This document shows positions 22,724 to 51,379 of a stretch of 64,000 bases of DNA, in pieces (positions within the stretch are counted from its first letter, which is position 1; the number at the start of each line of letters is the position of its first letter). Position numbers and translations under genes: made by a program. The notes below the pieces were generated by a model that saw nothing but the letters and a program-made list of their open reading frames with translations, ran no database searches and had not been told where the DNA came from. Location of the stretch: the sequence record MF498773.1; one strand, given 5' to 3'.

Positions 22724-25700
22724 ATGATAAAAGCTCCAACAATAACAAGTCTTCGCGTCGCCATGCTCGGCGCGAACTTCGTTCACCTAAAATGGGATGA
22801 TGTAGGTTCGAACTATTTTTATATTGTCGAATACACCATCGTTTCAGGTACTGGGGTAGATAGTTGGACACAATTGGGGGTGGAATATTCCCCCGAATTT
22901 TTCAGTTCATCTCTCATTCCAGATACAAAATATAAATTTAGAATATCTACAACTCATCCCGGTTTGGAGCCGTCTGATTGGGTTGTTAGTGATGTAATAG
23001 AATCATTCACAACAAACGCATATCAAATAACTACCATGGAGAAATTCATTCCATCGTTTAAGTTTATTGATATGAAGTTACATAAAAACAAGATGGATTA
23101 TATCAACCTCAATAGTGATGTGATTCAGGCTAGTTTGATGAATGAAAACTTTATATACGATCCTAGTATCTCAAACGTCACGAATATAGAAAATTTTGTT
23201 ACTAGTGACGATGAATACCATGAGATTTTGGGTTCTGTATCAAAAATTTGTCGGGATATTAATAGCGTTTACCTTGGCGCAAACCGTCGTGTTGTATACG
23301 CATTTGAAAAATATCAAAACTACTGTAAGGTAACTAATGACGGTGGGCAGAACTGGTATTACTACCAAGCTATTTCTGATCGCGTTGGATATCCAACCGG
23401 TAATACCGTAATGAGCCAAAACAGGAATACATCTTTCCTTCTTGGTTATGATTTTGCTTTTTACGGACGAAATGTTGATGAAGTAAGATTTAGCTCAGAC
23501 CTTCATTTTTGGTCGGATGATCAGCTTACATTTGTTAAGATGGATACTGATTCGTCTATCCCATTTCCTACTATGTTCTTTGGGACTTTTGCCAAGTACC
23601 CAGACGATATCAGAAGAAAAGTAGAAGCTCAAACTTCCTCTAATATGTGGCTATATGCCGCTGCAAATGGTGTTACTAGACGTATACGAGTATCTGGTGG
23701 TCCAACCGATAATGAAGGTAATATCATATGGGATCCGGAAGTCTTTACGATCTGTGATAATCCAAACGTAGTAGTTAAGAAAATGGATGTACTTAACGAG
23801 GTTTGTTATGCGCTGGTATCCGGTGAAGTAGATGCAGGGAAAGATAAAAGAGATCCGAAAAACGTAAAGAAATCTGTATATTCTGGTGTATATCGCCTCA
23901 ACGAAAAATACAAGAAAGAAGATTTCATGTTGGGAAATATGAATTTCTCCGACCCAACAGAAGATATTAATTTTGTAAATGGTATTGACGTTGGTCGTGA
24001 GATGGTAACTTTCCTTCCTGACGGTACACACGTTGGTAAAGTTTCTACTAGATGGGAATCTAGAGTATTCCAAGGTAGAACCCATGGAATGCAAATGAAA
24101 GTCAACTTTGTACCAAGTGATAGCCATGACTCGTTTGAGTTTATTGCTGATATCTATTCCGATCCAGTACAAAAGATAGTAGACCCGGTGAAATATAGTC
24201 GGTTTGTTGATGATTTTGCATATCCTAATATTTTTGACCTTTACCAAGAAGATGGGCAGATAGTAAAGCCTTCTGTTCCGGATGGTGGGTCATGGGAAAG
24301 AGTGTTTGGAAATACTGAGGATGAACGGTATAATATCGAACACAAATATTCCGATATGAGTGTTGATGGTACTAAATTATTTGTATCCGGTGCAACTTAT
24401 AAATACACCAATACTATCGAAGATCTTGATACCGTTAATAAATACCCGGATGATGTGACCTATGCGGTAAAATACAGTTCCGATTTTGGATATCTTAGTG
24501 AAAAGAAAGTTTTCATGTATCAATGGGAAACCGAAGATGGTGATGTTTTCTCCTTAAGACCAGCTAGATATTATAACGAGGCTGGGTTTGATTATATGGC
24601 TATGACTGGGGAGAGGGTTTGGAAAAACCATGAAAACCGAATAGTTCTTATAACACCTTCCACCAAATACCAATATAACATAGACCCTACACGGGAATAT
24701 AACAAAGAAGTTTGGAATAAAGGTTCTGTAAAATTTTATCTGAACAGTATCAATTTCAAAAACTTTAGTAAGTATTGTAACGGTATTTTGATTCACACTG
24801 CCTACAATAGAGAGAATGGTCTTGGTGGGGAGATATTTGGATACTATGAGTTCCCTTATCGTGTTAGGGATGAAGCATCTGTATTTTGGAGACCAGAATA
24901 TATCGCGTTGCAAGCTTCTTTGATAAACCAAGAAAGAGAAGTTGTTGAAGAGAAGAAGGATGATACAGGTATAATTGATCCAAATATCGCACCTATGTTG
25001 AGAATTATGGGACCTGAACATTATTTCAACGACTCAAATTACTCTAAGTTTGCTGAATATTATCTTCAATTCCTATCAGAAGGTACTGATTCGATGTATG
25101 GTAAACTTCTCAATTTCATCAAACTAAAATACCCGAGAGAGAAAGATTCTTTTGTATTTTTGTGGTCTGAGATGAGACGACGGAATATATATCTAGACCA
25201 AAACAAGAGAGATGAGGTTGTTAAATTCTTCGAAGCCAACGCCAATAACTTTTATAGCTCAAAGGGAACTCTGGATAGTTATAAGTTCTTGTTCAAACTG
25301 CTATATGATGCCGATGTAGATATTGAAATCGAATCTCAAGTTGGGATAGATTATGATATACTGGTTAAGTCGTCTAATATCAGTACTGATCTTGTTGGAA
25401 GAACGATATTTACCAAAACTGGTCGAGCCAACGTTACCTATATTGAACGTCAGTTTGTTGATGGTCAATTAAGATGGAAAATAACGATTCATAACCTTAT
25501 TGGGAAGTTGGAAGTTGGGCAAGAAATAAAATCTGAATCTAGTTCTTTTGTTGGTGAAGTCACTCGGGGAGTTAAGGGTAAAGAGCTAGCATATTCCGAC
25601 ATAGATTATATAAACAGAAACAGATCTTACTATATGATGAGAATTCGTTCTGAATTGAACACATCTCGGTATAAGGATGATGTTATTCGGTTTGTTCATC

Positions 25701-26227
25701 CAGTTGGATTTGGATTTGTTGGTATTACTCTACTAACTGTTATGGTTAACGGGGGTATTTCTATGAAACACATAGAGACTATCGTCGATATAAATAAATC
25801 ATATCGGTGGGATTCTGGTTTACCTAGCCTAACCCCTAAATATAGAACAGTACCAGACCCCAATGGTTCGTTTATAGATCCAGTACCTCTATTCGACCCG
25901 ATAACTGGGGAATTAATGGAAGTGGAACAACCACAAACGCCATTTGATGTGTCTGAGTGGAATAACGCAATTGATACAAGTACCGGTAATGTATTTGAGG
26001 TCAGGAATTATGACCAAGATGAACAGAACTGGACTGTTGACGGTGTTGTTTATACCCCATCGGCACGTAGGCTTGATGGTAGTCCCCTGTTTAGCGATTT
26101 CAGTAGTAGGTATTCTGACCTTAAACGGTTGTCAGAAAAACGGCTTAAGGATGATATAGGCAATCCTCGTGATGTAAGTAAACTCCTTGTGCCAGTACCA
26201 CCTACCCAAGTTAAGGTAGAACAATAA
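22724..26227 (+). CDS. 7: Baseplate wedge initiator gp7 (1167 aa)
   Basis: MIKAPTITSLRV, NFYSSKGT, FVHPVGFGFVG. Confidence 0.96.
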   Translation: MIKAPTITSLRVAMLGANFVHLKWDDVGSNYFYIVEYTIVSGTGVDSWTQLGVEYSPEFFSSSLIPDTKYKFRISTTHPGLEPSDWVVSDVIESFTTNAYQITTMEKFIPSFKFIDMKLHKNKMDYINLNSDVIQASLMNENFIYDPSISNVTNIENFVTSDDEYHEILGSVSKICRDINSVYLGANRRVVYAFEKYQNYCKVTNDGGQNWYYYQAISDRVGYPTGNTVMSQNRNTSFLLGYDFAFYGRNVDEVRFSSDLHFWSDDQLTFVKMDTDSSIPFPTMFFGTFAKYPDDIRRKVEAQTSSNMWLYAAANGVTRRIRVSGGPTDNEGNIIWDPEVFTICDNPNVVVKKMDVLNEVCYALVSGEVDAGKDKRDPKNVKKSVYSGVYRLNEKYKKEDFMLGNMNFSDPTEDINFVNGIDVGREMVTFLPDGTHVGKVSTRWESRVFQGRTHGMQMKVNFVPSDSHDSFEFIADIYSDPVQKIVDPVKYSRFVDDFAYPNIFDLYQEDGQIVKPSVPDGGSWERVFGNTEDERYNIEHKYSDMSVDGTKLFVSGATYKYTNTIEDLDTVNKYPDDVTYAVKYSSDFGYLSEKKVFMYQWETEDGDVFSLRPARYYNEAGFDYMAMTGERVWKNHENRIVLITPSTKYQYNIDPTREYNKEVWNKGSVKFYLNSINFKNFSKYCNGILIHTAYNRENGLGGEIFGYYEFPYRVRDEASVFWRPEYIALQASLINQEREVVEEKKDDTGIIDPNIAPMLRIMGPEHYFNDSNYSKFAEYYLQFLSEGTDSMYGKLLNFIKLKYPREKDSFVFLWSEMRRRNIYLDQNKRDEVVKFFEANANNFYSSKGTLDSYKFLFKLLYDADVDIEIESQVGIDYDILVKSSNISTDLVGRTIFTKTGRANVTYIERQFVDGQLRWKITIHNLIGKLEVGQEIKSESSSFVGEVTRGVKGKELAYSDIDYINRNRSYYMMRIRSELNTSRYKDDVIRFVHPVGFGFVGITLLTVMVNGGISMKHIETIVDINKSYRWDSGLPSLTPKYRTVPDPNGSFIDPVPLFDPITGELMEVEQPQTPFDVSEWNNAIDTSTGNVFEVRNYDQDEQNWTVDGVVYTPSARRLDGSPLFSDFSSRYSDLKRLSEKRLKDDIGNPRDVSKLLVPVPPTQVKVEQ

Positions 26228-28219: not shown

Positions 28220-30358
28220 ATGAAACAGCAAATTATTATTGGTAATCGTGTTGATGACGGAACCGGTGATTACCTTAGAAAAGGTGGTCAGAAGACAAAC
28301 GACAACTTTAATGAACTTTACTACAACTTGGGGGATGGTAACATTCCTCATGCTGCTGGTGCATGGAAACCATATAGCGACCACACAAAAACTCTATCGG
28401 CTATTATGGGTCAGGCGTGGGTAATTAATACAACAACCGGTCGTATTACTGTCAATCTTCCGAGTGGAACACCAGCCGATTATGGTAAGGTTATTCGTGT
28501 TCGTGATGTAATGGGAACTTGGGGTGGAAACCCAGTAATTCTTGTTCCCGGTGGATTTAATACCATCAAAGGGTCTTCTGGTACACACAGATTAGAAAAC
28601 AATTTCATGGACGTTGAGCTTGTATATTGCTCTCCCGGTAACTGGGATTATGTACCAAGTAAATATGTTGGTGAAATTAGATCCAACGACATAGCAACTG
28701 TTGCCAAAAAAGAATTTATTGCCACCGAAGGTCAAACCGATTTTCAAAATATATTCTCGTCTGGTTATAACAGAAACTCGATTAACGTATATAAGCGCGG
28801 TAACATTCTTTATTACGGTCAGGAATACGGTCCCGAATCAAACTATGGGTCTATTGTTCAAAAGACTGTTGCAGACCCAGCCAAGATTGATATTAACCCG
28901 GTACAAATCGATAGCGATAGGTGGGGTACTATTGTTGGTAAGGGAACTAGATTTGGAACAGTTGAAGGGAATACTATAGTATCCTTTTATTCCAAAGAGT
29001 CTGATAAAAAGACATACATAAAATTTGACCTTAATAAGAAACCACTTAACGAAGACCGTTTGGTTTGTGTTTATAACGATAAAACATACCTAATGAAATT
29101 CGATAAGCTGACCAGCGAATATGTTTCTGTGAATGAAACCCCTGACATTCTAGCTCAAATGAAAATAGCGTCAAAATTTTCATATTATGTTGGTGTTAGC
29201 AAAATAACAGACCTTGATGGATATACCATTAAGCTAGAAAAGCCCTGCGAAGCTGGTGATGTTGTTGTTATCGAAACTTTTTTAGACGGTTTGGCTACAT
29301 ATAGAAGTTCTTACGAAACTGCAACGATCCGGGTTTATTCCGACCAATATGTTCCTGTAGATTATGTTTCTGAAACAGGGCGTCGGTTTGTTGGGGATCT
29401 GTCTTCTAAATTTAGATTTAACCTTTCCGAATTTGGCTTCCAACCAAGTGAGACTTTTAACCCAAAAACTCTAGAGATGATTGTCAATGGTCGTCAATTG
29501 GTTAAATCTGGACAGGGTGATATACCGTTTTTTACTTGTGAGGGTGCGGATAGCTTAACTCAAGAATCTTGTATTTCTAATGGTGGTGTTTGGGTTCCTA
29601 CTGGTGTTGATTTTGGACCTATCGAAGATGAGAACGGTTATATGCGTGATATTGTGGTGAACGAACCGTTCAACCATGAAGACGTTATTACGATTCGTTG
29701 GTTTAACAATGATATTGGTTCGTTGCTTGAACTTGACGATATTATCAAAGAGACAGACAAAAAGTATATCAATACTGTTCCTGTTACTTTGACCGGGAAA
29801 ATTAGATATTCTGATCCTTTCAATCCAACCCCAAAGACAGTACAACCAGACCCTAACGATCTTGTCAACGTTCCAGCAAACTCTATTGCGATGTTGTTTG
29901 ATATGTTTTATCCGGTTGGTACTATCTATGAAAATGCACACAACCCAAACAACCCAGCAACCTATATGGGGATTGGTACTTGGGTTCGTTGGGCAGAGGG
30001 TAAGGTTGTTGCTGGGTGGAATAGTCAGAATCCAAACGACCCGATATACGGTCTGAATAACCAAGATTTGGATATTAACGGACAACCAAGACACAGTGCT
30101 GGTAGTATTTTTGGTGAAAACGACATAACCCTTTCTGTTGATAATACACCCGGAACAAAAAGTACTGAAAAGGCTCTTATTTCTGATCCGAATGGTGATG
30201 TTCTTGTTGGTGGATGTCAATACGATCCAGACGAAAGTGGACCGGGTTATAAGAAATATAGAGAGGATTATGTCTATACCAGACCAAACGAAACAGTAAA
30301 CCCGTTCTCTGTAATCCAACCTACAACCACCGCCCATAGATGGCTAAGGGTAGAATAA
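28220..30358 (+). CDS. 10: Baseplate wedge / tail pin gp10 (712 aa)
   Basis: MKQQIIIGNRVDDGTGDYLRKGG, YPVGTIYEN, RWLRVE. Confidence 0.97.
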   Translation: MKQQIIIGNRVDDGTGDYLRKGGQKTNDNFNELYYNLGDGNIPHAAGAWKPYSDHTKTLSAIMGQAWVINTTTGRITVNLPSGTPADYGKVIRVRDVMGTWGGNPVILVPGGFNTIKGSSGTHRLENNFMDVELVYCSPGNWDYVPSKYVGEIRSNDIATVAKKEFIATEGQTDFQNIFSSGYNRNSINVYKRGNILYYGQEYGPESNYGSIVQKTVADPAKIDINPVQIDSDRWGTIVGKGTRFGTVEGNTIVSFYSKESDKKTYIKFDLNKKPLNEDRLVCVYNDKTYLMKFDKLTSEYVSVNETPDILAQMKIASKFSYYVGVSKITDLDGYTIKLEKPCEAGDVVVIETFLDGLATYRSSYETATIRVYSDQYVPVDYVSETGRRFVGDLSSKFRFNLSEFGFQPSETFNPKTLEMIVNGRQLVKSGQGDIPFFTCEGADSLTQESCISNGGVWVPTGVDFGPIEDENGYMRDIVVNEPFNHEDVITIRWFNNDIGSLLELDDIIKETDKKYINTVPVTLTGKIRYSDPFNPTPKTVQPDPNDLVNVPANSIAMLFDMFYPVGTIYENAHNPNNPATYMGIGTWVRWAEGKVVAGWNSQNPNDPIYGLNNQDLDINGQPRHSAGSIFGENDITLSVDNTPGTKSTEKALISDPNGDVLVGGCQYDPDESGPGYKKYREDYVYTRPNETVNPFSVIQPTTTAHRWLRVE

Positions 30359-31329
30359 TGATAAGTATTTTTCAACAACCAAGAAGCCTAACATATTATG
30401 CTGGTAGTTCCTACCAGCTTTCTATCTTAGCAAGTACAAACAACGTAGATGCAGAACTTAGATATTCTTGGGAATCTTCCGTAGATAGCAATACTTGGAC
30501 CGCCGTTGTTGATGCGAGTGCGGCAACTGATAATCTAAGAGTTCTTCCATCAAACGCATCATATAATCATGGTTATTTCAGATGTCGTGTTAAAGAAGTT
30601 AATTCCACATCAGGTGCGGAACTAAGTTCTTTGGATTCGTCTGTTGTAACAGTGACTATGTTTGACGGTAGAACAAACACAGATATGACTAGAAGTCGAA
30701 TGGCTTCTATGATCAAGAGTAGAAAAGCATCAGACCATGAGTTTAATGGAGATTCGACATTAGAGACATTATCTGTTGTTGGTGGCATCGGTAACCTAAC
30801 AATCCAAGATGCAAGAAGTCATAACAAGTTCAAGACAGTTGAAAACGCAATTTCAGACGCTGCATATGTTGGAAGACTTAATAAAGGTTCTGTTATTATA
30901 AATATAGATAATACGGACCCTAGCGGAAAACCACAAATCGATACATTAACCTTTTCTGGTGCTATTTCCTCTCCAATTTCCGGTATGCCTGTTGTTCTTG
31001 ATGTATTTGGTACTCGAATTGAAGTTGCAGATGGTGTAAGTCCAACATTTGTTAGAGATAAAGTATTTGACTTACTTAAACAATTTGAAGTAGATGGTTT
31101 ATATGTGAGGGATGTTACTAAACTTTCTAGTGATTCTATAAACTTCACATACCGTGACCTTAGAGACCACACACCAGAACCATGGTCGGAATATGGGATG
31201 ACCGTTGATTGGGTTGTTGGTTCTCCTGCATCTTATGGTTACGGATATTGGGAAATGTTCTTTAAAGAAGATAAAGTCGCAATTGATACTACAGTAACAA
31301 CACTTTATTACTGGAAAAGGATTGGTTAA
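30358..31329 (+). CDS. 11: gp11 short-tail-fiber connector with N-terminal Ig-like domain
   Basis: C-terminal YGYGYW...LYYWKRIG; N-terminal QQPRSLT...YSWE...GYFRCRV. Confidence 0.9.
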   Translation: MISIFQQPRSLTYYAGSSYQLSILASTNNVDAELRYSWESSVDSNTWTAVVDASAATDNLRVLPSNASYNHGYFRCRVKEVNSTSGAELSSLDSSVVTVTMFDGRTNTDMTRSRMASMIKSRKASDHEFNGDSTLETLSVVGGIGNLTIQDARSHNKFKTVENAISDAAYVGRLNKGSVIINIDNTDPSGKPQIDTLTFSGAISSPISGMPVVLDVFGTRIEVADGVSPTFVRDKVFDLLKQFEVDGLYVRDVTKLSSDSINFTYRDLRDHTPEPWSEYGMTVDWVVGSPASYGYGYWEMFFKEDKVAIDTTVTTLYYWKRIG

Positions 31330-31331
31330 AA

Positions 31332-32684
31332 ATGATTAATAATACAGAACAACATATTAGTTCTAAAGCTGTTGATGTGGTGCTAGATCCTAGCACCACT
31401 AATTTCCCAGCAACAACTAATGATGTACAAAAAATGGCTGAACTCATACAACCCCATGCAATTGGAAGGTATGAGGATATGAAAGCAACCGAGACCAAAA
31501 TGGGTATTCTTCGGATCGCAACAGAATCGGAAGTGTTGGCGGGAACAGTATCTGATGCAATCGTTACTCCAAAGACTCTACAAGCCAAGTGGGTGCGCCC
31601 AGATGCGTCGGAGACAGTTAAGGGTCTAGTTAGGTACGCCACTAACGCAGAACGTCTAGAATCGGCTGCCAGCGCCTCTATAGGGATCAATACTATCGGT
31701 CTGTGGGATATGTTTAGAACTAAAGCTATTGGTTCTACCACAAAAGCCGGTACGTTGAAGTTATCCACTATTACTATTGGGCAGCAGGGTACTGATTCAA
31801 CTACGGCAACAAGCCCAGACGTAGTTAAAGCAATGATAGATAAGTTTGCAGTCACTGCAAACTCTGGTGCTACGGAATTGACATCTGGAATAGTTAAAAT
31901 TTCCCCATCCCCAGTAATTAATTCGGCTCTACATAACGGTGTGGCTGTTAGTCCAAAAGGATTTATTGAAACTCGTGCAACTCAATCAAGAGTAGGTACA
32001 GTGAAAATGGCAACACAGGCGGAGTCTAATGCTCGCACGGCAACTGACGTAGCTATTAGTCCGGCAACTTTACCGATTGGTTCATCTACTCAATGGGGTA
32101 TAGTTGCTTTAACTGATACTCCTGTATCCGGTGCAACAAATAAGGCTCTTAGTTCCCATGGTGCAACCAGTTTAGTTAGTAAGAGTGGTGGAACTATGAC
32201 AGGGGCTCTGATTACACCAAATCTGTATCTAACAAACCCCCAAGATGGTTCTCCAAATGCGGCGGTTAGATTTGATTGGGTTTCAAACTCATTACAGGAC
32301 AAACAAAACCAAATAGATAATAAAACTACAAAAGGAAGTGATGTAGTTTTCCGTAGATCTGACAAACAGCTTATATTTAACGCAAGTCCTTATGGTGGAC
32401 TAAAAAGCGGCGATTTTAATATGACACAGCCGTGGTGGAATTTCGATGGGATAATCGTTATTTCTTCTGGTGACGATGGTAGACATATGAAATCTTCTTA
32501 TTTTTCTAAGACTGAGTTGTCAATCCTTCAAAATAATTTCTCGAATGGTTGGTGGATTACCGACACCGATTCTACTTGGTGGGTTGGTAGGTTCAATGCT
32601 AATGGTACATATTTCCATACCGCCGGGGAAAACTGTGTTATATGGCATGTTTGGGGAGTTAATGATGTGTACGCAACTACCTAA
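31332..32684 (+). CDS. 12: Short tail fiber gp12
   Basis: NNTEQHISSKA, repeated AT..G...AT..E fiber motifs. Confidence 0.95.
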   Translation: MINNTEQHISSKAVDVVLDPSTTNFPATTNDVQKMAELIQPHAIGRYEDMKATETKMGILRIATESEVLAGTVSDAIVTPKTLQAKWVRPDASETVKGLVRYATNAERLESAASASIGINTIGLWDMFRTKAIGSTTKAGTLKLSTITIGQQGTDSTTATSPDVVKAMIDKFAVTANSGATELTSGIVKISPSPVINSALHNGVAVSPKGFIETRATQSRVGTVKMATQAESNARTATDVAISPATLPIGSSTQWGIVALTDTPVSGATNKALSSHGATSLVSKSGGTMTGALITPNLYLTNPQDGSPNAAVRFDWVSNSLQDKQNQIDNKTTKGSDVVFRRSDKQLIFNASPYGGLKSGDFNMTQPWWNFDGIIVISSGDDGRHMKSSYFSKTELSILQNNFSNGWWITDTDSTWWVGRFNANGTYFHTAGENCVIWHVWGVNDVYATT

Positions 32685-32718: not shown

Positions 32719-35700
32719 ATGGAAATTATTAAACCTGTATTGGATGACCTGAAATATACTTCTGATATGCCTGTTGCTGGTTCTGGTCAAAAACAGGTTG
32801 AATGGATTAAAAATGGTGAGCAACTGCAAGGTGCAGATCCGACTATTGTTGGTGATAAAGGGGGCGTTTTAAACCGCCCCTCTACTCAAATTTCTGCTAA
32901 CGTAGAGACATTGGATAAAAACCAAGAAACAATCCTTTCTAAGATGTCGGAAGTTATCGACAAGGTTAATATTCATGATGATATAATTAATGCTGGTGAC
33001 GGACGAGATTTATATCAACGAGTTGGTGATTTGGAAACAGAAATGGATGTCCATAGTGGGATCCTTGAAGATATCAAAGAAACCGACGTAATCCTCGACG
33101 CAAAAATCCAGTCAATTTCCGATAATATCGGAGTTGGCGATCCATCTCTTAGATTCCGAACTCTCCGAGCAGATGACCTTCATATCAAAAAAATGTTGGG
33201 TAATTATAAGGATTTTGATATCGATGGTGTTCCATCACCCGGTTCACTTTCTTCTGGGGTGAAAGGTCAGATCGAACGTAACTATAACACTGGTGTCAAC
33301 CTTGACGTTCGTGTTACTTCTCTTGAAAAATGGTGGGAAGACTCAACTCCAGCATCTTTAAGGGAAGAAGTTAACCAGATTAGAACCGAACTTGGACAAG
33401 ACCCGGATCCGACTAGGAACATTTATTCTCGTATCGGCGATTTAGAAATGGCCGACGAAACAAATTCACCTTTGGTTCAAGAACTTGTAGAACACACTGG
33501 ATACGGTGAATTCCCTCTCCAATATCTTGATGTACAAACCGATTCTTATCAAACCGTAGGTAATCTATACGATTATTCTTTACATGTCAAGAAAGACGTA
33601 GATTATATTAGTGGTATCGCCAAACAAACCGAGGGTCTGTCTGATGACTTGGCTCGCTCTCTTGGTTCGGCTAGTGATTCCACACTGGATACCACCGCTT
33701 GGGGTAGAATTAATGATCTACGTGTCCGTATGGAGAATAACGAAGGTATTCTGGGGTCTAGTCCTCTGGATGGATTGCAGGGAAAAGTTAAAGAAGTAGA
33801 CCAGAGAGAGAAAGAACATTTCGAAGATCTTGATGGTCGTGTTTCGAGTATATCAACTACTGTTAACGTCGAATATAGAACTTCTATTGAGGATCTACAA
33901 AATACCGTAGGTAATCCAAACACAGGTTTGGTTATCAAGGTAGAAGGGACAAAAAACGTCGCTGACGACGATTACCGTAGAATTGGTTCATATCAAGCAT
34001 CGAAAGATATGTATGAACAGATGTACCGTGATTATAAGAATGGTGCTGGATATATCCCTAACCCAACAGAAACTCGGCTTGGTGCTGTATGGTCGCGAGA
34101 ATATGATGGTGCTAACTGGGTATGGCGAGATTTGTTTACCACTAACTTTGTGGTTGGTGATAACAATAAGATTACCGCCATCGACGGAACCACACTTGTT
34201 TCTTATTCTACTGGTTCTGATGGGAAATATATCCCGACCTTTGGTCATAACGGAACAACCAAACTCCGTATAGTCGGCGACATTATCGGAAATATTTCTC
34301 TTGATACAACCTCTGATATCAGAAAATATGGGAAAACTATTCTTGGCTCTACCGATCAAACTATAAAAGTTGGTCAGAGTGATAAGAATATAGTTATGGT
34401 TGGTAAGGATATCGATTCTTTCAAGTATAACACACCAACCGGTGAATTTGATGTTCTGCATATTGGGAACTACAAAAAATATATCACCGACGTTAACCCA
34501 GAGAATGGATTTACCCTAAACCAGAATGCGGTAATTGGTTATGCAGGCGCAGATGTTATTAAATTAGATAACACTACAATAAATATTGGTTCTGCTAATA
34601 CAAACCTCGCATTTAAGGGAAATGTCAGCGAATTGATTATGGACCAAGACAAAGCGTTTAAGATGAATGTTGGTATGGGTAAACATCTAAACGTGGTCAA
34701 TAACTTTGGTGGAATATTGACATACGGTGATATTGAAACTACTAACGTATTTGCAACGGACCTTTATATTCAAGGTACTGGGGTTGATCGGTTTAAGGTT
34801 TGGCACCAAGGTATGGATGCACCCGCAGATGGTAGTTTTTACGCTCGTAAAAACAACCAATGGATGGTCGTTGAACAGGGTGATTCTGGTACTGGTATTA
34901 TTGGTGATGCACCACAGTCCGGATTGGCATACGCTCGGGTAAATGACGATGGTGTTGGTTTCTGGCAAGCCGTAGGCGAAAGAAATATAACCCTAGCAGA
35001 AAACGTATCTATAATGGCAAAAACCAATAGTGGTACGATTACTGCATTTACCGTTGATTCTGCAACCGTAACAACTCGAATTGGTGGAACTACAGGGAAA
35101 ATAAACCTTCGTGGTACTGTATCCGATTTCAAATTAGAAAGTAAAATTTCTACATCTTATGGTTCTCTTTTAGAAAGTACCCAAACCAAAATAGTGATCG
35201 GCGACACAACCACACCAGTGAATGTATATTCTACTGGGAATCTGTTTGTTGGTGTTGGTTCTGATGCTAAGAAAGTTTGGACCGACGCACATGACGCACC
35301 AAACAACGCGAATTTCTACGCTCGTAAGGGTGGGCAATGGACTCTAATCCATGACGGTATAGACCCGTCTAAGGATGTTTCTGTTGGTGAAACCAGCGAT
35401 TTCATCATTGGTGGATATAACGTAGCCAAGGTGGATACAGTTGGTGTCGATAAGCTAATGGTTATTGGTGATAGTAGAACGTTCATGAAGTTTGACGGTA
35501 AGGTAACTAACCTCAAGCTTGCAGAAGTAGGTGCCAATAATAGTTTCGGTATTACCACACAGGTAAATAATGTCGATAAGAACATAATTAGTATATCGCA
35601 ACCTTCTACAGAAAAGTTTATCGCAATTGGTGACACCGATCTACCGGTTCGTATTACCGCATCTGAGGTAACAATCAATAACGATAAAGTCCTCACAAAG

Positions 35701-35844
35701 GATAGTTTCGAAGCACCAGCAGACGGAAACAAGTACGTAAGACAAGATGGTCAGTGGACAAGAGCGTATTACTACGGTGATTTTGCTACAGACGCACCGA
35801 CCAGTCCTAAAGAAGGTGATGTGTTCTTCGAATTCATCAACTAA
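32719..35844 (+). CDS. wac: Fibritin/Wac, greatly extended (1041 aa) with several foldon motifs
   Basis: GQKQVEWIKNGE, GVLNRP N-terminus, coiled coil, repeated DAP.DG..YARK..QW. Confidence 0.92.
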   Translation: MEIIKPVLDDLKYTSDMPVAGSGQKQVEWIKNGEQLQGADPTIVGDKGGVLNRPSTQISANVETLDKNQETILSKMSEVIDKVNIHDDIINAGDGRDLYQRVGDLETEMDVHSGILEDIKETDVILDAKIQSISDNIGVGDPSLRFRTLRADDLHIKKMLGNYKDFDIDGVPSPGSLSSGVKGQIERNYNTGVNLDVRVTSLEKWWEDSTPASLREEVNQIRTELGQDPDPTRNIYSRIGDLEMADETNSPLVQELVEHTGYGEFPLQYLDVQTDSYQTVGNLYDYSLHVKKDVDYISGIAKQTEGLSDDLARSLGSASDSTLDTTAWGRINDLRVRMENNEGILGSSPLDGLQGKVKEVDQREKEHFEDLDGRVSSISTTVNVEYRTSIEDLQNTVGNPNTGLVIKVEGTKNVADDDYRRIGSYQASKDMYEQMYRDYKNGAGYIPNPTETRLGAVWSREYDGANWVWRDLFTTNFVVGDNNKITAIDGTTLVSYSTGSDGKYIPTFGHNGTTKLRIVGDIIGNISLDTTSDIRKYGKTILGSTDQTIKVGQSDKNIVMVGKDIDSFKYNTPTGEFDVLHIGNYKKYITDVNPENGFTLNQNAVIGYAGADVIKLDNTTINIGSANTNLAFKGNVSELIMDQDKAFKMNVGMGKHLNVVNNFGGILTYGDIETTNVFATDLYIQGTGVDRFKVWHQGMDAPADGSFYARKNNQWMVVEQGDSGTGIIGDAPQSGLAYARVNDDGVGFWQAVGERNITLAENVSIMAKTNSGTITAFTVDSATVTTRIGGTTGKINLRGTVSDFKLESKISTSYGSLLESTQTKIVIGDTTTPVNVYSTGNLFVGVGSDAKKVWTDAHDAPNNANFYARKGGQWTLIHDGIDPSKDVSVGETSDFIIGGYNVAKVDTVGVDKLMVIGDSRTFMKFDGKVTNLKLAEVGANNSFGITTQVNNVDKNIISISQPSTEKFIAIGDTDLPVRITASEVTINNDKVLTKDSFEAPADGNKYVRQDGQWTRAYYYGDFATDAPTSPKEGDVFFEFIN

Positions 35845-35855
35845 AAGGGTTTACG

Positions 35856-37352
35856 ATGGCTAACAAAGTGTATAAAAATGGGGTGGTGCATGACACCATC
35901 CCATCCATTTATAAAAATAACTGGCATAGGTCCGTACCGTGGGTTTTTTCTAATGGGGCATGGCATAGAGCTTATGACCTTGGCGACGAAAACCTATTAG
36001 CAAATAGTCGAATGTTGAATGGTACTGATATTTTTTGTTATTCTGACGGGGTTGTTATTGGAAACGTTCCACCATGCTATACCGTTTATAATAACTCGAC
36101 AAATACGGGAAATAACGCTTTTGCTATAAGCTTCAACCAAGATAATGAAAATACGAAAGGATATACATTCAGAACTATTGATAGTCGAATGTTCTTCCAA
36201 ACCCGTATTTCGTTAAAGGCTGGAAAAACTTATACCGCAAGCGTTATGGTTAAAAACAACGATCTTACGTTGGTTCATAGTGGTGTACTTGCTGATATAT
36301 ACATGGACAATGGTGACCCCATTGATAATTATCTAACATTTAAAACTAAATTTGATAATAATCCATTAATTGGTGATGAGAGAACCCGTATATACTCTAC
36401 TTTCACCGCAAAGAAAGACTGTCTAATACAATTTAACTTTGGTGTTGGAGTTAGATATAACACAAATGGTGATTTCTCTTTTGATTCACCTATGGTTACA
36501 AATACAAATATCCTGATCGATTATCAACCAACCCCCCACGTTTTAACCAACGAAGCAATTATTTTAAATAGAGACGCTGGATTCTCTACCACTGGTTCTT
36601 TGATGGTTGCGAACAAGACACATAAAGTTTCTGGTGGCCTTGTTATTGGTGATATCGCTACAGAACTAGTGATAGCTTCAAAAAACGTTGGTGGTATTTC
36701 TACTGGTATGGGCATAAATCTAGAAACTAACACATTCTGGGTTAAAACTCCCGATGGTGCATATCATACCAAACCGTTGAAAAGACCATTACCAAGAAAT
36801 AACAGTATTGGTGTATCTGTTTGGTTTGATGTATCTAACGGATTTGCTCAAAATATAAGGTTGTATGTAAACGGTGAAGTCTACGCAAGAATAACAGATC
36901 CATATCTTAGTCTTGATACAGGGCTCAATACTGTATTCGGGTTAAATAGTAATAACATCACCATTGAACAATTTGAAATTTACATGGATGGAAACAGTCA
37001 TCTATTTAATATTTCAAATCAGGGTAATGGAAAATTGGTATCTACTGATGGAAAACTGGTTCTTGATATCGTCGGTGATACAATTTGGTGGAGTACGGTT
37101 GCGCCTAAAATAACGAAACAACCACAAGTTATATATAACGCGCAAGTTGGTGATACGGTCGTGATAGAATCGGATTGTGATAGATTTTCCACAGTTCAAT
37201 GGAAAACCTCAAGGGGTGTTGAAGTAGGTAATTCTAAAAATCTAGAGATAGAAGTTACCCCAACTCTAGACACATCAATTTTCTACTACGCCATTTATAA
37301 GAACAGTTATGGTCAAGTAACCACTCGCTCAACTAGGATCCAAATATCTTAA
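35856..37352 (+). CDS. Putative whisker-tip adhesin (carbohydrate-binding-like, LamG-like and Ig-like domains; 498 aa)
   Basis: KVYKNG..WHR..W..GAWH N-terminal motif, beta-rich core, C-terminal PKITKQP...QWK...YYAIYKN. Confidence 0.6.
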   Translation: MANKVYKNGVVHDTIPSIYKNNWHRSVPWVFSNGAWHRAYDLGDENLLANSRMLNGTDIFCYSDGVVIGNVPPCYTVYNNSTNTGNNAFAISFNQDNENTKGYTFRTIDSRMFFQTRISLKAGKTYTASVMVKNNDLTLVHSGVLADIYMDNGDPIDNYLTFKTKFDNNPLIGDERTRIYSTFTAKKDCLIQFNFGVGVRYNTNGDFSFDSPMVTNTNILIDYQPTPHVLTNEAIILNRDAGFSTTGSLMVANKTHKVSGGLVIGDIATELVIASKNVGGISTGMGINLETNTFWVKTPDGAYHTKPLKRPLPRNNSIGVSVWFDVSNGFAQNIRLYVNGEVYARITDPYLSLDTGLNTVFGLNSNNITIEQFEIYMDGNSHLFNISNQGNGKLVSTDGKLVLDIVGDTIWWSTVAPKITKQPQVIYNAQVGDTVVIESDCDRFSTVQWKTSRGVEVGNSKNLEIEVTPTLDTSIFYYAIYKNSYGQVTTRSTRIQIS

Positions 37353-37363
37353 GGGGCATTAAA

Positions 37364-37507
37364 ATGCAAACCGCTGTACTTTTATTCTTTAGGACAATCG
37401 GTCTCGAAATTCTAACTCAGTTGCTTAAGGTGGCGGCGGAAGCAATCACCAAAAAACAGAAGCAGAATGAAGAAGATAAAGAGGCTAACAAAAATAAAGA
37501 ACAATAA
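37364..37507 (+). CDS. Small protein (47 aa): amphipathic N-terminus, charged tail
   Basis: GGGG RBS, manual translation MQTAVLLFFRTIGLEILTQLLKVAAEAITKKQKQNEEDKEANKNKEQ. Confidence 0.65.
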   Translation: MQTAVLLFFRTIGLEILTQLLKVAAEAITKKQKQNEEDKEANKNKEQ

Positions 37508-37510
37508 TTA

Positions 37511-37543
37511 AAAGCCCCGTTCGTTTATTCGTTCGGGGCTTTT
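37511..37543 (+). terminator. Terminator
   Basis: AAAGCCCCG...CGGGGCTTT. Confidence 0.8.
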
Positions 37544-37580
37544 CTCTAAATACCATTGTAAACTATTAAAGGAAGATAAA

Positions 37581-51286: not shown

Positions 51287-51379
51287 CGTTTTTCTTACTG
51301 GTCTAAATAATACTAGATAGAGTTCATACAGTCAACCAATGAATGAGCCCTAAATAAAAGAAAAAGAGGAATCTTAAAA

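Follow-up and report, generated by a model that had tools for sequence, protein, structure and literature searches.

The late region of Aeromonas phage AS-szw (Straboviridae, Emmerichvirinae, Ceceduovirus) contains a gene for an unusually long fibritin, the neck-whisker protein Wac, which is followed directly by a gene for a protein of 498 amino acids (aa). Both lie in positions 32719-37352 of the window, i. e. the whole stretch of 64,000 nucleotides (nt) from sequence record MF498773.1 that was analysed; this region is 100% identical to the AS-szw genome, and 14 further records from CC2-like Aeromonas phages match it at 96.7-99.1% identity. Homology and gene order identify the late-region unit made up of wac, the 498-aa gene, a 47-aa open reading frame (ORF) and a terminator as an AehI-type neck-whisker locus, here in a T4-like Aeromonas phage; the 498-aa protein corresponds to Aeh1p218 (gp218) of phage Aeh1. 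As for its role, we tentatively propose, as possible rather than probable, that the gp218-like protein is a permanent distal subunit of the whisker, which would dock by a foldon-mimicking N-terminal hairpin on the last foldon and the tail of the trimeric Wac, with the internal foldon-like hairpins as reusable registration clamps and with fibre-like proteins of sister lineages extending the cassette.

Wac of AS-szw has 1041 aa compared with 487 aa in T4 (X12888.1), a ratio of 2.1. An initial annotation that had been made from the letters alone had already put it at about twice the T4 length, and the bounds and lengths given there for both ORFs (32719-35844, 1041 aa, and 35856-37352, 498 aa) are exact. 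Residues 7-408 align with residues 4-396 of T4 fibritin (2bsg/3j2o; E value 1e-26 in phmmer, 1.5e-32 in a profile search) and residues 7-72 match the T4 fibritin fragments 2ibl/1ox3 (E 1e-11), while aa 1-100 as a query matched 1161 phage records, nearly all of which are annotated as fibritin. By homology, aa 1-408 keep the neck-attachment domain and the coiled-coil shaft of T4. The C-terminal end of T4 fibritin is also kept, internally and in degenerate form, because Pfam Fibritin_C, a model of this end with the foldon included, matches aa 388-474. This stretch ends in a degenerate foldon-like hairpin (aa 443-474, nt 34045-34140), which agrees with the degenerate motif that had been placed at about 34048, and the T4-equivalent internal region is partly deleted in the lineage of Cronobacter phage S13 and Citrobacter phage Ci1. 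Around 570 aa follow the T4-like part, and in place of the single terminal foldon of T4, four further foldon-like motifs are found after aa 474, the last of them 25 aa from the end. Therefore, with the T4-equivalent C-terminus at aa 388-474 and four later motifs, Wac of AS-szw is best regarded as a variant fibritin and not as one of the T4 type.

The strict motif pattern occurs at only four sites in the six frames of the window (34816, 34906, 35293 and 35710), precisely where the initial annotation had seen foldon-like motifs. Their likeness to foldons was assessed with hhalign. For this purpose, a profile of the C-terminal 35 aa from six natural Wac proteins of the T-even type (T4, RB27, ACG-C40, mar005P1, PNJ-6 and Moon, found via the N-terminal 100 residues of AS-szw Wac) was compared with column slices of the long-Wac alignment. 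Motifs 1, 3 and 4 gave 97.1-97.2% (E about 5e-11), motif 2 gave 94.8% and the central motif at aa 443-474 gave 53.7%, compared with at most 1.5% for 25 control slices of equal length from the same half of Wac. As isolated sequences, the motifs reached 13.5-20 bits against Pfam Fibritin_C, below the cut-off of 21, and nothing beyond these sub-threshold matches was returned by Pfam and NCBIfam scans of isolated C-terminal pieces of Wac. In a HMMER alignment, 11 of 17 residues of motif 4 are identical to the T4 foldon. A profile search of the PDB retrieved at the motifs (aa 998-1014 or 700-742) only fibritin and approximately 100 engineered foldon-tagged constructs, whose chains resemble Wac through the tag and not through the fused protein.

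Wac proteins of AS-szw, 65, ZPAH1, Aeh1, Cronobacter phage S13, Citrobacter phage Ci1 and Vibrio phage VmeM-32, which are overall 26-71% identical to the AS-szw protein, were aligned; the alignment is shallow, as word-indexed homologue searches gave only six to seven close relatives, even with the seven-lineage profile. All four motifs fall into the same alignment columns in the seven lineages, with invariant residues in motif 1 (D700, P702, D704, Y708, R710 and W715), motif 2 (W749), motif 3 (A860 and W874) and motif 4 (P1000, D1002, Y1006, R1008 and W1013). A chance pattern is ruled out by these invariant columns, by the lack of further sites in the window and by the low values of the controls, and the multi-foldon description of Wac is well supported at the sequence level. 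In a monomer model of the C-terminal half (aa 409-1041), generated with AlphaFold2 (AF2) from a seven-sequence alignment, the program DSSP assigned a two-strand hairpin at all five sites, with a predicted local distance difference test score (pLDDT) below 55 throughout. The Wac of VmeM-32 (vB_VmeM-32; L004, 2613-5984) is interrupted by some 130 additional aa after foldon-like motif 1 and before motif 2.

The distal part of Wac is arranged in the order segment A1, module, motif 1, motif 2, module, motif 3, module, motif 4 and a tail of 25 aa, so that each of the three module copies, 100-140 aa in length, is followed by a foldon-like hairpin. The repeating β-modules suspected from the letters are borne out by profile comparison, in which a duplicated unit of foldon-like motif plus β-module was detected (B, aa 700-858, versus C, aa 859-997: 98.4%, E 4e-15, 110 columns) and in which the first module copy, A2, resembles that of B (92.7%). 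In addition, module C weakly matches a tail fibre of an Erythrobacter phage over aa 855-1013 (E 5e-3). Taken at the level of these profiles, the Wac extension is a predicted β-structured, tail-fibre-like rod. In such a rod, the foldon-like hairpins would serve as local trimerisation and registration clamps, by which the three chains of each module could fold in register.

An architecture of this kind belongs to a class that is already in the literature. Letarov and Krisch (2013) sorted fibritins into eight C-terminal types and characterised the AehI type by a fibritin of twice the T4 length that is weakly homologous to tail-fibre proteins and is followed by an additional gene (PMC3797505). According to homology and synteny, the AS-szw locus is a typical member of this published type and not a new system. 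The C-terminal half of its Wac is 29.3% identical to that of Aeh1 over 567 aa (E 1e-68), the partner protein is homologous over its full length, and both phages share the order gp12, wac, gp218-like gene, further sequence and gp13, with a Wac of about twice the T4 size. They differ in genus (Cinqassovirus for Aeh1) and in the genes for gp219-221, which are present in Aeh1, whereas AS-szw has only the 47-aa ORF at this place. A gp218 homologue directly 3′ of wac is also found in S13, Ci1, VmeM-32 and metagenomic contigs; wac and the partner gene occur together in 41 of the 41 phage records that have either (35 from Aeromonas, four from Cronobacter, one from Citrobacter and one from Vibrio), and the pair is syntenic even in metagenomic contigs with the most divergent family members. 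This synteny and the vertical divergence rule out a recent acquisition of the locus by mosaic exchange. The idea of the initial annotation that Wac has been repurposed as a receptor-binding fibre is met halfway by these comparisons: a role in host recognition has been suggested for AehI-type fibritins (PMC3797505), but the locus is no new oddity, being of a published type shared by 41 phages. In Aeromonas phage Ah1 (MG250483.1 / NC_055733.1), wac is annotated as two coding sequences (CDSs; wac_1 and wac_2) and the tblastn match falls into two pieces, which could reflect a break or a sequencing artefact.

The N-terminal domain, the coiled coil and the genomic position are common to T4 fibritin and AS-szw Wac. 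In contrast to the one terminal foldon of T4, the AS-szw protein has four extra foldon-like hairpins, β-modules that are absent from T4 and a conserved 25-aa tail after motif 4. That one Wac can have several foldon-like motifs is known from the JS98-type fibritin, in which two of them are separated by a coiled-coil spacer (PMC3797505). JS98 fibritin folds by itself, whereas AS-szw has four or five motifs, β-modules as spacers and belongs to a type that reportedly depends on a partner; only the T4 and JS98 fibritins have been described as self-folding via foldons (PMC3797505). No mention of four foldon-like repeats in AehI-type Wac was found in the literature, with the primary paper of 2005 in J. 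Bacteriol. outside its coverage, and the multi-foldon design seems to be under-described.

The partner gene begins 11 nt after the stop codon of wac. Its 498-aa product is 37.5% identical to Aeh1p218 (98% coverage, E 2e-96, tblastn) and is encoded at the same position after wac; by this similarity it is the gp218 orthologue. It belongs to a PHROG family without known function (phrog_9363), and sequence searches of Pfam, NCBIfam and the PDB returned no match. A HMMER search of 1.84 billion representative proteins yielded about six full-length relatives, besides many multi-repeat proteins whose similarity is confined to the last ~80 residues and which carry Pfam Ig_3/I-set domains of the immunoglobulin (Ig) type. 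An AF2 model based on 14 sequences has a mean pLDDT of 74.7 and comprises three confident all-β domains. In the PDB, Foldseek matched it to tandem laminin G (LamG) pairs (laminin LG4-5, Gas6), the lectin wings of a bacterial sialidase, enzymes with carbohydrate-binding modules (CBMs) and galectins (E 1e-7 to 1e-3, probability 1.00), and furthermore to a Bacteroides carbohydrate-binding protein and Ig arrays. In BFVD, members of its own family ranked first, followed by phage proteins annotated as ‘Concanavalin A-like lectin/glucanase’ or ‘LamG-like jellyroll’. The description of the middle part as LamG- or concanavalin A (ConA)-like is supported by this model at the level of the fold, with sugar binding being only putative.

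For the C-terminal Ig domain, profiles gave E values down to 8e-17 against multi-repeat proteins; the single sequence alone had no Pfam match. Its closest solved relative is gp20 of Shigella phage Sf14 (9C2D chain S, E 3.7e-17), which decorates the capsid in the manner of Hoc, with its Ig domains pointing outwards. The Ig domain is missing from the partner homologue of VmeM-32, and the AS-szw protein is itself without a C-terminal extension of ~30 aa that is present in the Aeh1, S13 and Ci1 homologues. The domain order that the initial annotation had read from the translation, with a Trp-rich N-terminus, a carbohydrate-binding/LamG-like middle and an Ig-like end, is recovered, the middle and the end by model, fold comparison and profile searches. 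Within the protein, conservation is highest in the Trp-rich N-terminus.

Where the two proteins might meet is suggested by their conservation, as the C-terminus of Wac and the N-terminus of the partner are the respective maxima. The last 50 residues of Wac have a mean pairwise identity of 0.55-0.57, compared with 0.42-0.47 for the N-terminal domain, 0.43-0.46 at the motifs, 0.22-0.27 in segment A1 and 0.31 overall; in the partner, aa 31-60 reach 0.62, and the Ig domain is the least conserved part. In a direct alignment, partner aa 29-44 and Wac aa 1006-1021 share 8 of 16 residues. By profile, the second hairpin of the partner (aa 20-48) matches motif 4 plus tail, whereas its values are at most 3% against motifs 1 and 3 or the T-even foldon and at most 1.2% for controls. 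Conservation peaks, alignments, the 11-nt gap and the common terminator favour a direct contact between the C-terminus of Wac and the N-terminus of its partner. In the mechanism that we favour, the conserved N-terminal hairpin segment of the partner would engage the conserved C-terminal foldon and tail of Wac, promote folding of the trimer from the C-terminal end and then stay bound, so that the unit would encode an accessory fibre made of two proteins. The whisker tip would then display two lectin-like β-sandwiches and a Hoc-type Ig domain, which would give weak, broad adherence to surface glycans and would not set the host range.

Proteins that combine both tasks are known. Gp38 of the T2 type is an assembly factor as well as a retained adhesin, and some Tfa proteins stay bound on tail fibres; in the gp37-gp38 systems of T2, T6 and S16 type, as with fibre-retained Tfa, a downstream gene is needed to fold the C-terminus of the fibre and its product stays as the distal binding element. 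By analogy, a docked lectin tip of the gp37-gp38 kind is plausible for the whisker. The partner gene of AS-szw likewise stands directly after a fibre gene; it has no relationship to gp38 or Tfa in sequence or fold, and its fibre is a neck whisker and not a tail fibre. A homologue of gp38 is ruled out, as no homology to gp38, Tfa or gp57A was detected in Pfam, NCBIfam, PHROG or PDB sequences and as Foldseek gives lectin and Ig folds only. Of the comparison with gp37-gp38 drawn in the initial annotation, the gene arrangement and its conserved synteny hold, as an analogy without kinship to gp38; gp218 has been reported as a chaperone (PMC3797505).

The latter report gives the only experimental evidence so far reported on the downstream gene. 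When Aeh1 fibritin was expressed alone, it ended up in inclusion bodies, while co-expression with gp218 afforded soluble, trypsin-resistant oligomers that were stable in sodium dodecyl sulfate (SDS) (unpublished data in PMC3797505), and Letarov and Krisch concluded that gp218 is a specific fibritin chaperone (PMC3797505). The 498-aa protein may hence be a chaperone only, which transiently trimerises or folds the long Wac and is absent from the finished virion, leaving a whisker without a separate tip. This account deserves to be taken seriously, even though we find it rather doubtful. Besides the co-expression data, the strict linkage and tight spacing of the gene pair and the lack of diversification among close relatives are in its favour. 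The chaperones gp38 and gp57A of T4, which act on fibres without being retained, provide a precedent. Against it stands the make-up of the protein: with ~500 aa, two lectin-like sandwiches and a Hoc-type Ig domain it is unlike known fibre chaperones, and it matches none of the Tfa, gp38 or gp57 families. Ig modules of this type occur on virion-exposed proteins, such as Sf14 gp20 (also Fraser et al., cited in PMC3797505). The combination of an anchor that is conserved and distal domains that vary or can be missing also fits better to a retained structural protein, and retention on the virion is favoured by the predicted lectin-like and Hoc-type Ig folds, which are typical of exposed phage proteins. 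That the partner is an assembly factor which stays on as a lectin/Ig tip falls, in our judgement, just short of probable.

Several points weigh against such a retained tip. Gp218 was called a chaperone and was not reported in the folded product (PMC3797505), and no virion proteomics, micrograph interpretation, whisker description, structural or binding data for any member were found in the literature covered, which included papers on AS-szw, P19, S13, VmeM-32 and 65.2. The similarity between the N-terminus of the partner and Wac is moderate (64-66% over 14-16 columns), and foldon-type trimers at each of the motifs are putative in view of the mean pLDDT of 37.8 for the C-half model. By sequence, no lectin, LamG or CBM family match was obtained for the partner (Pfam, E<=0.01), and the Foldseek matches have low global template modelling (TM) scores of 0.17-0.30, with several domains aligned together. 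Finally, at close range the pair lacks the pattern of a host-range determinant. AS-szw was isolated on A. salmonicida and CC2 on A. hydrophila, yet each of the two genes is 98.8% identical in these phages, which is within the 97.8-100% of 24 neighbouring structural genes, with gp12 as an outlier at 86.9%. At longer range, both evolve faster than most structural genes: wac and the 498-aa gene are 59% and 68.5% identical, respectively, between AS-szw and phage 65, compared with 70-86% for most neighbours. The short tail fibre gene gp12 (31332-32684, + strand) is a local candidate for host-related divergence.

The kinship of the Ig domain with Sf14 gp20 raises the question whether the 498-aa protein might instead be an independent decoration that sits on capsid, collar or sheath like Hoc and is encoded in the wac locus without docking on the Wac tip. 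Besides this closest solved relative, a Hoc-like capsid decoration protein, the interval between wac and gp13 is a hotspot in which different genes are inserted depending on the lineage. Like Hoc of T4 and Sf14 gp20, which display Ig domains away from the particle, the partner has an Ig module of the same sequence family; in contrast to them, it is a separate protein with a single Ig domain behind two lectin-like domains, and no capsid-binding domain was identified. Moreover, the partner never occurs without an AehI-type Wac in the 41 phage genomes and has just ~6 full-length relatives in 1.84 billion proteins, the effect of gp218 on fibritin folding implies a direct interaction (PMC3797505), and the resemblance of its N-terminus to the Wac tail as well as the coinciding conservation peaks would be unexpected for a free decoration, which we therefore regard as improbable.

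A separate, overlapping question is whether the long Wac works only as a T4-like sensor that holds the long tail fibres, or helps to attach them, with a longer reach, neither protein binding host or environment. The N-terminal two-fifths of Wac, orthologous to T4 fibritin, would fit this role, as would a locus that is vertically inherited and slow-changing at close range (also PMC3797505). However, the equivalent of the T4 foldon, which would have to contact the knee of the tail fibre, has an internal position and a degenerate sequence, and one lineage has lost part of it; moreover, the added 570 aa resemble tail-fibre material, so that a function confined to sensing appears quite unlikely. 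For Ig-bearing fibritins of the RB43 type, Letarov and Krisch proposed a role in accessory adhesion (PMC3797505).

The idea of a permanent distal subunit that can be extended further draws on sister lineages. In Aeh1, S13, Ci1 and one metagenomic relative, the gp218-like gene is followed by genes whose products have the N-terminal ~75 aa of Aeh1p219 (phrog_23703) in common. Towards the distal end these products are dissimilar, with PTR tail-fibre repeats, a knob of the BclA_C-like kind, a segment that weakly matches Laminin_G_3 and, in a protein of 902 aa, a stretch resembling Wac. Judged from these sequences, the genes after the gp218-like gene look like an extendable fibre cassette, which favours retention of the gp218-like protein on the virion; AS-szw has none of them.

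Ever since 2005 it has been asked what fibritins of the non-T4 types do. With a partner that is retained as a lectin/Ig tip, T4-like phages widespread in aquatic and enteric settings would bear an accessory, neck-borne adhesion fibre, which would bear on the understanding of phage adsorption and environmental retention; with a permanent distal subunit as proposed above, T4-like phages would carry a second, neck-borne adhesion organelle. In protein engineering, the T4 foldon is attached once, at a terminus, as a tag for trimerisation, and natural proteins that reuse the foldon hairpin four times between β-modules are of interest in this field. The Aeromonas phages concerned are candidates for phage therapy in aquaculture, for which a correct annotation of surface proteins is of practical value. 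The features of the locus are compiled in Table 1.

Table 1. Features of the neck-whisker locus of AS-szw, in coordinates of the window, and related genes of sister lineages, in coordinates of their own records
Feature	Position	Strand	Evidence or remark
wac, 1041-aa AehI-type fibritin (neck whisker)	32719..35844	+	phrog_9687 ‘fibritin neck whisker’ full length, E 0; 100% identical to ATI17413.1
N-terminal neck-attachment domain and segmented coiled-coil shaft, aa 1-408 (by homology)	32719..33942	+	T4 fibritin homology; phrog_1056 over aa 4-408
Equivalent of T4 fibritin C-terminus, now internal, aa 388-474	33880..34140	+	Pfam Fibritin_C 35.2 bits, profile positions 6-92/93
β-rich segment A1, without clear relative, aa 475-594	34141..34500	+	profile similarity to modules B and C weak (7-31%)
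β-module copy 1 (A2), aa 595-699	34501..34815	+	hhalign vs module part of B 92.7%, E 4e-7; vs C 68%; BLASTP E 1e-4
Foldon-like motif 1, aa 700-718	34816..34872	+	strict pattern; T-even foldon region 97.1%
Foldon-like motif 2, aa 730-751, longer loop, in tandem with motif 1	34906..34971	+	strict pattern; 94.8%
β-module copy 2 (B), aa 752-858	34972..35292	+	comparison of unit B with unit C
Foldon-like motif 3, aa 859-877	35293..35349	+	strict pattern; 97.1%
β-module copy 3 (C), aa 878-997	35350..35709	+	comparison of unit C with unit B
Foldon-like motif 4, aa 998-1016	35710..35766	+	strict pattern; 97.2%
C-terminal tail, aa 1017-1041	35767..35841	+	with motif 4, most conserved stretch of Wac
498-aa gene, Aeh1p218 (gp218) orthologue (by homology)	35856..37352	+	tblastn, position, phrog_9363
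Trp-rich N-terminal segment, aa 1-58	35856..36029	+	two β-hairpins modelled, AF2 pLDDT 30-48; candidate Wac-interacting part
Two tandem ConA-like/LamG-type β-sandwiches (predicted), aa 59-414 (about 59-228 and 229-414)	36030..37097	+	AF2 pLDDT mostly 75-90; Foldseek
Ig-like domain (Ig_3/I-set, Hoc-like), aa 415-498	37098..37349	+	profile matches to multi-Ig proteins
47-aa ORF, last gene of the wac unit	37364..37507	+	ATI17415.1; phrog_20541, E 2e-33
Intrinsic-terminator-like hairpin closing the unit of wac, 498-aa gene and 47-aa ORF	37510..37543	+	RNA folding
Genes with Aeh1p219 N-terminal domain	L002 7594-8199; L003 7550-8761; L007 6012-6959; L017 7876-12054		Aeh1, S13, Ci1 and metagenomic relative

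The locus is embedded in a T4 late structural block, in which gp10, gp11, gp12, wac, the 498-aa gene, the 47-aa ORF, gp13, gp14, gp15 and the terminase genes follow one another, so that wac lies between gp12 and gp13 as in T4 (Pfam, PHROG and annotation of the neighbours). The terminator-like hairpin was spotted by eye and then folded, as an automated scan missed this long-loop structure; it has a folding energy of -19.6 kcal/mol (z -7.0), and none of 200 shuffled sequences was equally stable. In VmeM-32, the corresponding flanks have annotated terminators. For a separate T4-type late promoter of the 498-aa gene, no exact consensus was found within the unit, and matches with one mismatch were not above chance. 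The 47-aa ORF has a hydrophobic N-terminal half and a Lys/Glu-rich C-terminal half and is kept in CC2 and ZPAH1; a small ORF is located at the equivalent place in VmeM-32.

Further observations concern the surroundings of the unit. The octamer TCTAAATA occurs on the + strand at 37545-37552, directly 3′ of the terminator and ~30 nt upstream of gp13, and again before gp24 at 51302-51309. Possibly, this phage group uses it as a variant late-promoter box of the T4 kind; its one-mismatch matches are not enriched overall. Gp7 (22724-26227, +) is encoded by one ORF of 1167 aa in AS-szw, and two CDSs (7a/7b) are annotated in CC2 and phage 65. In gp11 (30340-31329, +; 329 aa), the matches to Pfam GP11 and phrog_963 begin only at aa 116-149, and the N-terminal extension of ~115 aa weakly matches a PHROG annotated as ‘virion structural protein’.

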